Shown in pieces: positions 1,591 through 64,000 of a stretch of DNA of 64,000 nucleotides (the first letter of the stretch is position 1; each line of letters starts with the position of its first letter). Source of the stretch: Octopus sinensis. Its lineage: Eukaryota. A program made the position numbers and the translations under genes. Location: contig NC_043010.1 in NCBI RefSeq assembly GCF_006345805.1, forward strand, positions 60,574,001 through 60,638,000. Reading direction: 5' to 3'. Under the pieces are notes generated by a model. It had not been told where the DNA came from, searched no databases, and worked only from the letters and a program-made list of their open reading frames with translations.

Positions 1591-4500
1591 CAGCATATAT
1601 TGGTCTACTGTGTCTTCTACATTTACTGATCACCCTTGTACTGTCCATAGATATTACATACCATGTCAAGGAAGAAGACAGACCTCACACCTATATTGGA
1701 GACATTGCTGTTGACTCCAACTTATCACACCCTCTCACACATCAACAACACACTCTCATTACATTTACACAACTACAAAGGACAGTCGAGAGTGGTTCTC
1801 ACTTATTTAATGTCACCAACTCAGGAAAACTATACACTACTCAAACACTGGACGCTGAGTCTCTGTGTACCTACAACAAGGAATGTTCCAGAATAGTTAA
1901 AGTAGCTGTGAGAAAAGGACAAACCTTTATGAAAATCCTTAAAATAAAAATATTGATACAGGACATCAATGACCATTCTCCAGAATTTCCACAGAATGAA
2001 GTTGAAATTGCATTTTCTGAGAGAGACAGTAAAGGAACTAGAATATCTCTTCTAAACGCAATTGATAAAGATATTTCAATAAGAAATTCCCAACTTAAAT
2101 ATATGATTGAAAAAAGCAAGAGTGAACCATTTTCTCTCTCTGTCACAAAACAGGATGGTATTTTCATACCTGAACTCATACTAGAAGAAACATTAGATAG
2201 GGAACTTCAAGACTCATATATTTTAGCAGTTCAAGCTAAAGATGGAGGAAACCCTCCCAAAACAACTACACTCAAGGTACACATATCTGTAACAGATGTC
2301 AATGATAACACACCTGTATTTTCCCAGAAAGTCTACAATATCTCTATAAATAATTCACATCAAAGACATTTACCAATTCTTACTTTAAAAGCCACAGATA
2401 AAGATTCTGGACTCAATGGAAAGATTTCTTATCATTTCAACCATAAAACATCTCAAAATATACAGAAATATTTTGTATTAAATAAGAAAACTGGAGATTT
2501 ATTTTTAGATGATAAATTTCAATTTACTAAAAAGCAATCTTATAAATTGTTTATTGAAGCAAGGGATGGAGGACAGTCACCCAAAAAATCTGTTACCAGA
2601 GTTCAGCTTCATGTAATTAATAATGAGAATAATGCTCCATTGATAAATATAGATTTTGTATCTCCTTTATCAGAGAGTTCAGCAGCTGTTTCGGAAGCAA
2701 GTAAAATTGGTAGTTTTATAGCTTATGTTATGGTCACTGACACTGATAGTGGACCTAATGGTGAGGTTATCTGTGATTTAAAACATGATAAATTTAAACT
2801 TGCCAAAATTGATTCTAAAGAATATAAAATGATTGTTAAGGGCCATCTTGACAGAGAAATAAGGGACCACTATAAAGTATCTATTGTGTGTCATGACATG
2901 GGGTCACCTCAACTAGAAAGTAAAAAATATTTCTCTGTCAAAGTAACTGATGTCAATGATGTAGAACCACATTTTACCAAAGAGACATTCCAATTCCTCA
3001 CTTATGAGAACCAGAAAGTTGACTTCCCTATTGGCTTCATCAATGCTACAGACCCTGATCTTGGAGATGGAGGCCAACTTACATATTCTATCATCAATGA
3101 TAACAACAATGATAACATTCCTTTCCAACTGACAAAATATGGATTCATTTCTACATCACAACCAATAGATCGAGAAATGAAAGACATCTATAAGTTCCAG
3201 GTTTTAGTGAAAGATAATGGAACACCTTCTCTCAATGACACTGCCAATATTGTTATTGAGATTCTAGATAAAAATGATAATGCTCCGTATTTTACGTTTC
3301 CTAATAATGACCCTACAATCTCGATGTCCACTACCATCCACACAGTAAGAAGGACATCACAATTCTGAGAGCATCTGACAAAGACACTGGAAACAATGCT
3401 TTCCTCACATATGGAATACTGAGATCCAATGATAAAAACCTGTTTACAGTGAACTCACACACTGGTGTGTTATCTTTCTCTCGCACAGTTTACCAAAATG
3501 ATGCAGGAACATATGAGCTGCAGTTTATAGTGAAAGACGGTGGTACTCCAGTTCAATCAGCAACAACTGCTATCATACTAACACTGTTTGTTAGTAATGA
3601 TACAACTCCAATGTTGACTGCTGTGCCATTCCAGTCTGGTCACGACCTGAATATGACTTGGGTAATTATCATTGTAGCAGCAGCTGTAATACTATCTGTG
3701 GCTATTGTAGTGTCCATAACACTGTGTGTTTTCAGATGTATTAATCACACAAATAACTCACCCACAACAGCAGAGAATCCCAACTTTCTCTCTCAGACTG
3801 AGATGAGACAATTACTGTATCAGACTAACAATCCTGTTGCAATAACGAGAAATGCAGAAGAGATATTTAACCGAAATCTTCAGACAATAAAATCTAAAAG
3901 TCAGTTTTTTCTGGAGATGGAACAGACACCAGATGAGTGGAAATTCTCAACAACACAAAGGAGACTTCCACCTGTGCCTCAGGTAAATATTATTTTAATT
4001 GATTTTTCGGAAATGATATATCACAGTTGTGGTTATAACAGTTATGTTCTAGTTTGTATATTTTTTCCTTTTCTTTCTAGAAATGTAAAAGCTTTCCTAT
4101 CAGTTTACACCTTTCAGAATTAGTAGAATTATTTCATTTAACAACTAAACTTGTTTCTCTAATTCTTTTATACAAATAAATTATTGAATATTAATAATTC
4201 TGATGGTCTGATTGTATTACCCTTCCTTGTGTCTTACCTGGGGCATTCTAGAATATAAATGCAAAAGTTTCTTCTTTTTAGCCTAATGATTCACCCTGCT
4301 TTGTTTTCTAATCCACAGAGATGTGATTCAATCCATAGTCAAGGACGTCGCACCAGTTCCATCATGTCTTACAACAGTGACACCTTAACATCCCAAAAGG
4401 ACAGAGAAGCTAGCAAGAGTAATGGCAAGACTAAACCATATGATGAGATACCTGCAGAACCAGGTAACTTTTATCAAAACATAACATATAAATGTAATTG

Positions 4501-4707
4501 CCTTTATTACTGTAGGACAATATATAATGTTATGCTTAGTGTAATATAAGATCAATGTTTCTATCTTTATATATTGGAGTTGTTATATTGAAATGTAATT
4601 TGTGTGTGTGTATTTGATATTTTACAGAATATACCAATGACAATCCAGTGGCAGCCACAATACTAAAGGGACAACAAATACAAGATACGTATCTACAGCC
4701 AACATAG
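1587..4707 (+). CDS. Pcdh: Protocadherin copy A (6 EC + TM + tail); one 1-nt frameshift near 3314
   Basis: join(1587..3982,4319..4463,4628..4707). Signal peptide, EC1 C-x5-C motif ([12 protein letters not shown]), DxNDxxP linkers, DRE and DxD motifs, [33 protein letters not shown] vs CCCTTAC in intact copies splits the ORF (1587..3368 and 3449..4123). Confidence 0.88.
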
Positions 4708-5502
4708 TAGATGTTCCATGACTATTGTTAAATGATTCTCTCACACACCAAATCTTATACAATACTTTATATTCATATAAAAATATCAACTCTATGTTTC
4801 TTTCACACATTACACGCATAGAAGGCCTTACAGTGGTATCTATTATCATCCCTTTTTTACATCTCTGATACACTAAATATTACAAAACACCCAACTCTAC
4901 ATTACCATAGTTAATTATTATTAAACATTTATTTTACTGTCAGTTTTAGTATAGACATTTCACTAAAACTTAGATAAATTAACCTGATTCATCCTAGAAT
5001 GTTTAGTTTTTGTAGCTTTTAGTTTGATATCAATTCTATGTTTAATTAATATCATCTATTTTGTTTTATTGAGTGTTTTTAAAATTTTACTAATTAACAG
5101 TAGCTACAATTTAAGGGCGGCATACTGTTATCTATATTGAAAACATTAAAAGTTTTGTTAAATATTGAAATTTAAAGGGATTCATATTTTAGGAAGTATA
5201 AAGTAGAAAATGTCAGAAAAATAAGATTGTTCTTTTTTTTTACTTGGGAATACTTTTGTTTCTCCTAATTTACTTCGTTTACAGTTCCTCTAATCATGAA
5301 AACTTCTTAAATAATGAAATTTTTGTTGACTTACTCTAAAATTAATTTGTTTCTGATAGAAATCCTGATTATGTATTCTTATAGTGAAGTTAATATCAAG
5401 AAATATTATTATAAATCTTATATTTTAATACAAATCTCTTATTTCCTAACATTAGATATATAAATTTAGTGTTTTTATTAAATAGAAAAAATGAAGTTGC
5501 TT

Positions 5503-6190
5503 CTGTTTAACATGACTTCTCTTATTCAATGTGTTTGTGTGACACAGACCACATTGCAGTAATTTCCTATTGGATGAGAGAAATTTTCTCTATTTCTTTC
5601 AATATTGAAAGTGAGGCTGATAGCTTTTTTCTTTGTTCATCATACACACAATTGTGTGTGTGTGTGTGTGTGGAGGACATAGGGTTGTAACTAGCACACA
5701 CCAGCATCTGGCTAACATCTCACCTCCCACTACATACAGCAACTGTCACACTATTATATCAGCAGTTACACAGGAACAGCAGCAGCAGCTGCAGTAACAC
5801 AGGAACACTACTACAACAGCAGCAGTACCACTATAATACCACTACAGCAGTAGCAGCAGCAGTTAGAGTGGAACACTACAGCAGGATACACATCATCCAT
5901 CACACACAACTACAGTGAAGGATTAAACAATGCAGGTAAGTCTCTCTCTCTCTCCCTTTCTTCTCTTTATTATCTTTTCATATTCATTATAACATTTATA
6001 TTATTTGTGTTTCTTAATGAAAGACAGGGTAAGGATAATATCTAAAATGTCTGCCATGTTGTATATATACAGGGACTGGGACAGTGGAGGATCGAGAGAT
6101 CTAGCCATCACTTCCACCATTAACAACAACATCTGTAATAGACATTGTAATATAATTACTTCAAACTGCATTACGTCTTTTAACGTCAGA
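5503..6190 (+). promoter_or_regulatory. Conserved non-coding block 1 (candidate promoter + leader exon for copy B)
   Basis: ATTGG at 5569, palindrome CTTTCAATATTGAAAG 5596-5611, (GT)n, CAG-rich segment, donor CAG|GTAAGT at 5935/5936, second donor-like AGG|GTAAGG at 6028/6029. The block is near-identical in 8 units. Confidence 0.55.
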
Positions 6191-62690: not shown

Positions 62691-63139
62691 CCCCATTGCT
62701 AATTTGGTACCTGTTTATAGCCAGTTACACTGGCCATTGGGGAGTTAGGTATCCTGGTTATGAACACAATACAGAGCTAGAGATTGCTCTTACTTTCAAG
62801 TGTAATCTTTTAGCTACAATTTTTAATATATATAATGTGTGTGTGTGTAAATACACACACACTTTATATGGTCAATTAATTCATAGGTGTTTAATTGTAC
62901 TAAATTTTAAAATACTTAGTGTTTCATTTAAACAATGTACTGCATCTGTCCCGACCAATATTTTGGTGAGACTGTGTATCTCAATACAACTAAAACTATT
63001 TGTTCAGTACTTATCAGAGTCAGATGAGCACTGAATCATCGAAACATTGCTTTCGCATAGTGACACATAATATTGTTTTTAAATGAGTTAGTCTGAAAGA
63101 TAAATAATGAGACATATTGATAATTCAGTATAAAAGCTA

Positions 63140-63348
63140 TGAAGGTGATGGGATGGTGGAATTGTTAGCTTGCCAGGCAAAATGCTCAGTGGCATTTCAT
63201 CCATTTTTACATTCTGAGTTCCAATATTGCCAGGGCCAACATAGCATTTCATCCTTTCGGGTTCAATAAATTCAGTACCAATTGAGCACTGGAGTACATG
63301 TAATCAATTTACCCTTTTCCCCAAGTTTGCTTGCAAAATTTGAAACCT
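63140..63348 (+). mobile_element. SINE with TSD, paralogous insertion to 54207-54416
   Basis: TSD GTATAAAAGCTA at 63128-63139 and 63349-63360; same flanks as the 54207 copy. Confidence 0.75.
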
Positions 63349-63660
63349 GTATAAAAGCTACCATGGTGCTTGTATATTCCACAAAGATAACTCTTACTCA
63401 CTAATGAATGTCACATCAGGAAAAGATGGTTTTTAAATTGTACATTTGGGTATAATAGAATGTATTTACAGATATATATGTGTGTGTGTGTGTATACATA
63501 TATGTGTGTGTGTGTGTGTGTGTGTGTGTGTGTATACATATATATATATATATTAACATTGACCTGTTTGCTATTATTTCCATAAGTTATTTTATTTTCA
63601 ATACTGCTGTTGTCTTTTGTAGCAGTTTCTCCTGCTGAAATGTGATGAAGAATTCCAGAC

Positions 63661-64000
63661 ATGACAGCATATATTGGTCTACTGTGTCTTCTACATTTAC
63701 TGATCACCCTTGTACTGTCCATAGATATTACATACCATGTCAAGGAAGAAGACAGTCCTCACACCTATATAGGAGACATTGCTGTTGACTCCAACTTATC
63801 ACACCCTCTCACACATCAACAACACACTCTCATTACATTTACACAACTACAAAGGACAGTCGAGAGTGGTTCTCACTTATTTAATGTCACCAACTCAGGA
63901 AAACTATACACTACTCAAACACTGGATGCTGAGTCTCTGTGTACATACAACAAGGAATGTTCCAGAATAGTTAAAGTAGCAGTGAGGAAAGGAAAGACAT
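63661..64000 (+). CDS. Pcdh: Protocadherin copy I, 5' end only (signal peptide + most of EC1), runs off the window
   Basis: ATGACAGCATATATTGGT... ([11 protein letters not shown]...VAVRKGKT), open to 64000, with the conserved acceptor at 63622/63623. Missing from the ORF track, presumably because no stop codon lies in the window. Confidence 0.9.
   Translation, partial: MTAYIGLLCLLHLLITLVLSIDITYHVKEEDSPHTYIGDIAVDSNLSHPLTHQQHTLITFTQLQRTVESGSHLFNVTNSGKLYTTQTLDAESLCTYNKECSRIVKVAVRKGKT

Follow-up and report, generated by a model that had tools for sequence, protein, structure and literature searches.

Charge coupling between the first and fourth cadherin repeats of tandemly arrayed octopus protocadherins points to a probable antiparallel contact

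Octopus protocadherins form a family of well over a hundred genes that expanded independently of those of vertebrates. Nine of these units, designated copies A to I, lie in a stretch of 64,000 nucleotides of the Octopus sinensis genome (NCBI RefSeq assembly GCF_006345805.1, contig NC_043010.1, positions 60,574,001 to 60,638,000, forward strand), referred to below as the window. In these proteins, the charge of residue 112 in the first extracellular cadherin repeat (EC1) is coupled to that of residues 372 and 374 in the fourth (EC4), and the coupling extends to cephalopod relatives well outside the array. It probably reflects a direct contact between 112 and 372/374 of two molecules that form an antiparallel EC1:EC4 dimer, a contact which would contribute to binding specificity. 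The physical contact, the trans geometry and the effect on specificity are all read from coevolution combined with domain topology. A 2019 review states that nothing was known about the adhesion specificity of cephalopod protocadherins (PMC6339937), and no equivalent coevolution analysis was found for cephalopods in the literature searched. The two coupled sites are located as follows in copy G, whose numbering is used throughout.

49172-49174, + strand: K112 (AAA), the coupled residue of EC1, in the turn of its F-G beta-hairpin
49952-49969, + strand: D372 to S377 (DSEVDS), EC4 A'-B loop directly after the calcium-binding E371; 372 and 374 are the coupled residues

A sequence-only reading of the window had proposed that the basic loop motif KGKT of EC1 is matched by the acidic patch DSEVDS of EC4, and the acidic loop KEET by ASKIGS. 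The proposal was followed beyond the window in a close family of 30 units from Octopus and Argonauta and in a wider family of 124, then 214, non-identical cephalopod EC1-4 units, 90 of which were added by means of a divergent query. A further search of representatives at 50% identity returned giant multi-cadherin proteins only and added nothing. When all variable columns of the close family are compared, column 112 shows its strongest association with 372 (normalised mutual information, MI, of 0.83), followed by 374. The value for 111, its own neighbour, is 0.79 and all other columns, however near, reach at most 0.39. Since column 112 is tied to 372/374 rather than to nearer columns, the pattern is the opposite of that given by simple linkage. 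D372 is present in 19 of 20 units with K112 and in none of the 10 with E112; the mismatched combinations KGKT with SKIGS and KEET with DSEVDS were thus not seen to be common.

The wider family displays the same association. With the average product correction, 112-372 ranks first by MI among 37,202 long-range pairs in the first 124 units, and 18th of 39,712 in the 214 units. An acidic residue 372 accompanies K or R at 112 in 74 of 85 units and D or E at 112 in 9 of 87 (odds ratio 58). Substitutions were also counted by parsimony on a neighbour-joining tree built without sites 112 and 372. Of the 426 branches, 23 carry a change at both positions (60 and 45 changes in total; hypergeometric p=1.9e-10), which makes 112-372 the strongest of 40,124 long-range co-substituting pairs; it ranks third when the tree is built from the EC1 and EC4 columns only. 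The charge changes are of opposite sign in 18 of these joint events and of the same sign in 3. Mean-field direct coupling analysis (DCA) places 112-372 second and 112-374 third among 61,075 long-range pairs. Charge at 372 is the most negative correlate of charge at 112 among all columns (r=-0.66; next -0.45), with a Spearman rho of -0.65 across 86 representatives of less than 70% identity. Full charge reversals, in which E112 occurs with K or R at 372, are included, and the coupling is also seen in subfamilies 45-56% identical to G. Finally, the rule was applied out of sample to the 90 sequences, which had been fetched after it was stated: 372+374 is net-negative in 19 of the 23 units with a basic residue at 112 and in 7 of the 48 with an acidic one (odds ratio 28, p=4e-8).

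Two features of the initial proposal had to be narrowed. The coupling holds between residue 112 and residues 372 and 374, and not between the four-residue and six-residue motifs as units: an O. vulgaris copy combines KGET with ASKIGS, which indicates that residue 112 carries the rule rather than the whole loop motif. Likewise, the suggested two-state lock is retained as a pair of K and E states obeying a charge rule; it is leaky, with copies A and E neutral at the loop and several exceptions among the relatives.

The couplings of residue 112 belong to a larger set joining the same two domains. The top seven long-range DCA pairs are all EC1-EC4 (119-413, 112-372, 112-374, 105-383, 119-383, 105-413 and 65-357). 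The top 30 inter-domain MI pairs comprise 23 EC1-EC4 pairs against 5.3 expected, and EC1-EC2 and EC1-EC3 pairs are depleted. The additional positions map as follows in copy G.

49151-49153 and 49193-49195, + strand: K105 and R119, cross-strand neighbours on EC1 strands F and G, coupled to 383 and 413
49985-49987, + strand: M383, EC4 strand B, aligned with K338 of gammaB4
50075-50077, + strand: E413, start of EC4 strand E
49031-49033, + strand: R65, EC1 base after strand C, coupled to D357
49907-49909, + strand: D357, top of EC4 strand A

A charge swap at 119-413 (K/R with E/D, or E/D with K/R) is present in 210 of 214 units, and acidic residues at 105/119 go with K383 and K/R413. Pairs such as 119-413 and 105-383 stand at the top by plain MI; their swaps occur at the level of subfamilies and involve few independent changes (co-substitution ranks 189 for 119-413 and 1518 for 105-383). 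Both pairs were consequently rejected as repeated events and kept as geometry support only.

The sequence-only reading had placed the loop at the tip of EC1 and the patch at the base of EC4, and the AlphaFold2 monomer model (mean pLDDT, the predicted local distance difference test score, of 86.7) agrees. In EC1, strand F (101-110) and strand G (113-125) are joined by a hairpin turn at 111-112; in EC4, strand A' (366-370) is followed by the A'-B loop (371-377) and strand B (378-385). Its four domains form an extended rod that superposes on the EC1-4 structures of Pcdh18, 8, 17, 19 and gamma protocadherins (template modelling scores 0.6-0.77). In such a rod, residues 112 and 372 of one chain are far apart and an intramolecular contact is implausible. 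According to their secondary structure, the coupled pairs would be ordered along EC1 as base (65), middle (105/119) and tip (112), facing, in EC4, the top (357), the upper part (383/413) and the base (372/374). This is an antiparallel register, and it would bring the EC1 C-F-G face against the EC4 A-B-E-D face. The idea of an antiparallel EC1:EC4 dimer, which had been put forward from the window alone, is thus supported by coevolution and topology, from which we infer the contact itself.

The proposed mechanism can be summarized as follows. Residue 112, in the EC1 F-G hairpin turn, would face 372/374 in the EC4 A'-B loop across an antiparallel EC1-4 dimer of two molecules. In the K state, K112 would pair with D372 and, in the octopus array, with E374 and D376 as well. 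In the E state, E112 would stand opposite a non-acidic residue 372 (A, G, S, K or R), usually accompanied by K374. A homodimer would then enjoy two favourable or neutral contacts, and a mixed dimer would oppose E112 to D372/E374 and K112 to K374. The pair would in this manner add a binary electrostatic filter on top of the diversity of EC2-EC3.

The coupling could also be real and selected for a reason other than a trans antiparallel EC1:EC4 contact, such as another geometry of the oligomer, a third partner common to both sites or the overall charge of the ectodomain. This is unlikely. In its favour, the vertebrate counterpart of residue 112 contacts a different EC4 position, and the EC3-EC4 linker lacks the usual acidic calcium ligands, so that the octopus rod may have less rigidity than its vertebrate equivalent. 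Selection on total charge would spread compensation over many sites, whereas 372 stands out as the single strongest anticorrelate of 112. Another geometry would have to accommodate three clusters of EC1-EC4 couplings in antiparallel register, on the faces of known dimers, and the depletion of EC1-EC2 and EC1-EC3 pairs among the top couplings. The linker in question (49874-49900; residues 346-354 of G) reads NNQNTAPLI and occupies the same place in all copies, the family consensus being INQQNNAP. Both aspartates of the DxNDNxPxF motif are gone, which suggests reduced calcium binding and a more flexible joint.

In the window itself, the motif pairs were located by a six-frame motif scan. The copies are listed below.

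1587-4707, + strand: copy A, three exons; KGQT 1914-1925, ASKIGS 2697-2714; 1-nucleotide deletion (frameshift) at alignment column 1735 in the first exon
9567-12641, + strand: copy B; KEET 9894-9905, ASKIGS 10677-10694; first-exon open reading frame (ORF) of 817 residues intact
15810-18825, + strand: copy C; KGKT 16137-16148, DSEVDS 16920-16937; frameshifts and a 78-nucleotide deletion
22612-26125, + strand: copy D; KGKT 22939-22950, DSEVDS 23722-23739; several frameshifting indels
31870-35030, + strand: copy E; KGTT 32198-32209, SSKIGS 32980-32997; many frameshifting indels
40911-44015, + strand: copy F; KEET 41238-41249, ASKIGS 42021-42038; first-exon ORF of 846 residues intact
48839-51946, + strand: copy G; KGKT 49166-49177, DSEVDS 49952-49969; intact
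48839-51238, 51555-51701 and 51866-51943 plus stop codon, + strand: exons 1, 2 and 3 of copy G
54751-57720, + strand: copy H; KEET 55078-55089, ASKIGS 55862-55879; 2-nucleotide deletion right after the loop and 1-nucleotide deletion at alignment column 1677
63661-64000, + strand: copy I, first 113 codons only; KGKT 63988-63999, at the window end

The pairs announced for the eight complete copies were recovered in all of them: KGKT with DSEVDS in C, D and G, KEET with ASKIGS in B, F and H, and the neutral loops of A (KGQT with ASKIGS) and E (KGTT with SSKIGS). The motifs lie where they had been placed; the numbering required a small correction, the patch covering residues 372-377 with E371 before it and the loop of copy I ending at 63999. 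For this truncated copy, a DSEVDS patch had been predicted beyond the window. The O. sinensis protein P0128, identical over 113 of 113 residues, carries KGKT with DSEVDS, as does the syntenic O. vulgaris counterpart (locus L001, 18947 and 19733). The pairing also cuts across flank relationships as described, since B and D (95.8%) and F and G (92.9%) are mutually closest downstream and differ at both sites.

The statistical argument drawn from the window did not survive. The three matching copies had been assigned a chance of 1 in 56. Among informative events at least 700 nucleotides apart in the window copies, 10 of 788 event pairs share a partition, which is 1.3% against 0.84% expected at random. 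With partition sharing so close to chance, a matching pair picked after looking is unremarkable, and the covariation in the window alone is no more than chance once the selection of the pair is counted. At the DNA level, the split of C, D and G from A, B, E, F and H is supported by one synonymous site near the loop (column 351) and six clustered patch sites, or approximately two events. The copies form a mosaic of incompatible partitions.

The two sites are moreover the edges of a hypervariable block. Over coding sequence nucleotides ~300-1135, the copies are 84-90% identical with 24-46 variable sites per 100 nucleotides, and the flanks are 95-99% identical. The loop (nucleotides 328-339) stands at one edge and the patch (nucleotides 1114-1131) at the other.

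49148-49966, + strand: hypervariable cassette of copy G, coding sequence nucleotides ~310-1127, residues ~104-376

Positions 48788-64000 of the window align in the same order with O. vulgaris OX597827.1 (96-98% identity), and the individual copies find their nearest proteins among O. vulgaris models (96-99%). Compared with its syntenic O. vulgaris copy (49148-49966 against L001 4141-4959), G displays ~17% differences over nucleotides 310-1127 only, with near-identical flanks. The O. vulgaris copy is the KGET with ASKIGS unit mentioned above, both sites having switched together, and the entire block was exchanged after the two species separated. Nine O. vulgaris array copies were read from the DNA of three loci: six are KGKT with DSEVDS, two KEET with ASKIGS and one KGET with ASKIGS, so that K112 goes with DSEVDS and E112 with ASKIGS in 9 of 9. 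In Argonauta, the paralogs are KGKT with DSELDS against [KR][EA]E[ITA] with ASK[VI][NG]S. The O. vulgaris counterpart of F was dropped as a second case of joint switching, as the match is limited to the coding region and an additional copy is present at this place in O. vulgaris. This extra KGKT with DSEVDS copy lies between the counterparts of F and G (L003 9986-10789; OX597827.1, ~79.276 Mb) and constitutes a difference in copy number between sibling species.

Such replacements raise the main rival explanation, namely that loop and patch are the ends of one gene-converted block (~104-376), of which two old types persist by descent. Co-transfer of the block edges does account for some close-family events. 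The joint switch of G and its O. vulgaris counterpart within a block that alone differs, the outline of the block given by the density of variable sites, the chance-level sharing of partitions in the window and the many joint changes on short terminal branches of the close family all fit this account. As a full explanation it is nevertheless quite improbable. The copies are mosaic inside the block, where C, D and G are not mutual nearest relatives, and 112 is tied to 372/374 and not to the nearer columns except 111. The coupling, which includes full reversals and is the top co-substituting pair of 40,124, also extends to subfamilies 45-56% identical to G, to which this block structure does not apply. 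Hitchhiking would also leave the antiparallel set of other EC1-EC4 couplings unexplained.

The reading of the whole as an artefact of pseudogenes, assembly errors or chimeric gene models is scarcely credible: frameshifts do affect 5 of the 8 complete copies and many public gene models are truncated or fused, but both states are represented among the intact copies B, F and G, the same pairs recur in the independent O. vulgaris assembly (DNA) and in Argonauta hians proteins, and the indels miss both sites. The frame-breaking indels of A, C, D, E and H are of 1-2 nucleotides and fall in short homopolymer or dinucleotide runs. Those of C (alignment column 1674, ~17480) and H (column 1677, ~56425) lie within the same TTGTTATTG stretch, and the database protein P0041 has the same shifted tail, AILLLRF, as copy C. 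As regards the public models, many from O. vulgaris (P0016, P0018, P0121, P0124-P0126, P0139 and others) begin at Met115 (MKIL...), just past the F-G loop. Those protein records lack EC1 and the loop, yet both are encoded in frame in the DNA (L001 9986).

A number of observations weigh against a direct contact between 112 and 372/374. In the independent 90-sequence set alone, 112-372 ranks only 164th of 38,696 pairs by MI. Exceptions to the rule include P0123 (XP_036365212.1; KGKT with ASKIGS), P0019 (KGKT with DSQIGS), the P0044 group (KGKT with DTKVGS, in three species) and eight units combining E112 with D372. About half of the joint changes belong to the close family and may owe something to block exchange, and both sites stand at the edges of a cassette able to move as one block. 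Neighbour-joining trees and parsimony are approximate on recombining paralogs. Copies A, C, D, E and H may be pseudogenes or assembly errors. Lastly, the vertebrate clustered protocadherin residue aligned to 112 (residue 84) contacts residue 338, which corresponds to octopus 383 and not to 372. The register would have to differ from that of vertebrates, possibly in relation to an F-G hairpin that is three residues longer. The equivalence of K112 with gammaB L84 was kept as a lead only, given that the HMMER alignment depends on the placement of a three-residue gap.

In spite of these points, the direct contact retains the preference stated at the outset. A broader proposition, with about even prospects, is that the independent octopus expansion uses a vertebrate-like antiparallel EC1-4 dimer together with an often-flipped salt-bridge switch (112 with 372/374) at the cassette edges. 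Selection would keep the switch matched, and gene conversion would shuffle what lies between its two halves and homogenise what lies outside. The couplings predict a binding architecture, the antiparallel EC1:EC4 interface, and name the residue pairs 112-372/374, 119-413, 105-383 and 65-357. If true, residue-level evidence of mutual recognition among cephalopod protocadherins would be available for the first time. If confirmed, two independent families of neural recognition proteins would share, by convergence or retention, one and the same dimer and the electrostatic separation of isoforms, and selection would be holding two distant sites together in a recombining gene array.

A separate observation concerns the codons of residue 112. 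K112 (AAA in G, 49172-49174) and E112 (GAA in B, 9900-9902) are distinguished by an A or a G in the first position of the codon, a change of the kind made by A-to-I RNA editing. Cephalopod protocadherin transcripts are reportedly heavily edited (PMC6339937).

The array is organized as follows. The nine repeats are arranged head-to-tail on the + strand with a spacing of 5.9-9.3 kb, and the G+C content of the window is 33%. Each repeat begins with a large ORF specifying six cadherin repeats and a transmembrane segment, the layout of six-repeat protocadherins of the delta-2/clustered type. First-exon ORFs are intact in B (9567-12020), F (40911-43451) and G (48839-51382) only, with ~817-847 residues; in these three copies one large exon encodes the ectodomain and the transmembrane segment, and the GT donor of G is at 51239. 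Two small 3' exons, located 0.3-0.8 kb downstream of the big exon, encode the cytoplasmic tail. As every unit possesses its own copies of them, the array consists of tandem whole three-exon genes and not of variable exons with shared constant exons as in vertebrates. Similarity between units begins only ~110 nucleotides before each ATG (1476-1586 in A and equivalents), and the 1.2 kb farther upstream align poorly between copies (~40%), except between G and H (59%). Pfam reports five PF00028 stretches in G together with N-terminal PF08266 and PF23592. Inter-repeat linker motifs are found at residues 126, 238, 346, 456 and 562, four of the five being canonical DxNDxxPxF, and the hydrophobic stretch of 24 residues (transmembrane) is present in relatives. 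G is most closely related to proteins annotated as 'protocadherin beta-15-like' in Octopus sinensis, O. vulgaris and Argonauta hians; an exact look-up of its ORF product returned no entry.

Several known systems can be compared with the octopus array. The solved delta-2 protocadherins all form antiparallel EC1-4 dimers, and they are the nearest solved relatives of the octopus proteins (6vg1, E=2e-94), with Pcdh18, 8 and 17 leading the fold search. Delta-protocadherin dimers associate through the EC1 C-F-G face and the EC4 A-B-E-D face (Harrison 2020, PMC7082078), and solved protocadherin dimers have the EC1 F-G loop and the EC4 strand A/B region in common as interface elements (Cooper 2016, PMC5115871). 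Contacts described in delta dimers comprise R40-E328 and E81-R349 in Pcdh19 and E80-K398 and Pro92:Ala356 in Pcdh1; variable salt bridges at the periphery of the interface are thought to set specificity (PMC5115871, PMC7082078, PMC6769022). The EC1:EC4 salt bridges of Pcdh19 and Pcdh1 are described as favouring matched over mismatched dimers. No claim is made that 112-372 corresponds to Pro92:Ala356 of Pcdh1, as counting from the conserved cysteine gives Leu94 near residue 119. The delta and octopus proteins share an insertion in EC4 strand A relative to gammaB4; delta protocadherins are, however, single genes and not arrays.

In vertebrate clustered protocadherins, E41 of gammaB with K338/R340, as opposed to R/K41 in gammaA and alpha, forms an EC1:EC4 salt bridge that favours matched and repels mismatched dimers (Goodman et al. 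2016, PMC5106212). The likeness to the octopus lies in EC1:EC4 electrostatics: K338 of gammaB4 aligns with octopus residue 383 (HMMER), which is K exactly in the octopus subfamily with acidic 105/119. The vertebrate rule acts between subfamilies, whereas the octopus 112-372/374 pair often flips between near-identical paralogs. The octopus sites are also different (F-G hairpin tip and A'-B loop) and belong to an independent gene expansion. Coevolution had already predicted the trans interface in vertebrate protocadherins, the top long-range couplings being EC1-EC4 and EC2-EC3 (Nicoludis et al. 2015, 2016, 2018; PMC5001838, 10.1101/493106). These analyses covered vertebrate clustered and non-clustered families, not cephalopods. 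One member of the top vertebrate intermolecular coupling, 84-338, is the counterpart of octopus 112 in the HMMER alignment, with uncertain gap placement.

At the level of the locus, tandem head-to-tail units are common to vertebrates and octopus, but the shared downstream constant exons of the vertebrate clusters are not found in the octopus array. Gene conversion with maintenance of ectodomain diversity has been described in vertebrate clusters (Noonan et al. 2004, as cited in PMC6339937). The octopus array resembles them in its homogenised flanks (95-99%) and diverse central ectodomain block (84-90%). Unlike in the vertebrate clusters, this diverse block has the EC1 F-G loop and the EC4 A'-B loop as its limits and is embedded in whole three-exon genes.

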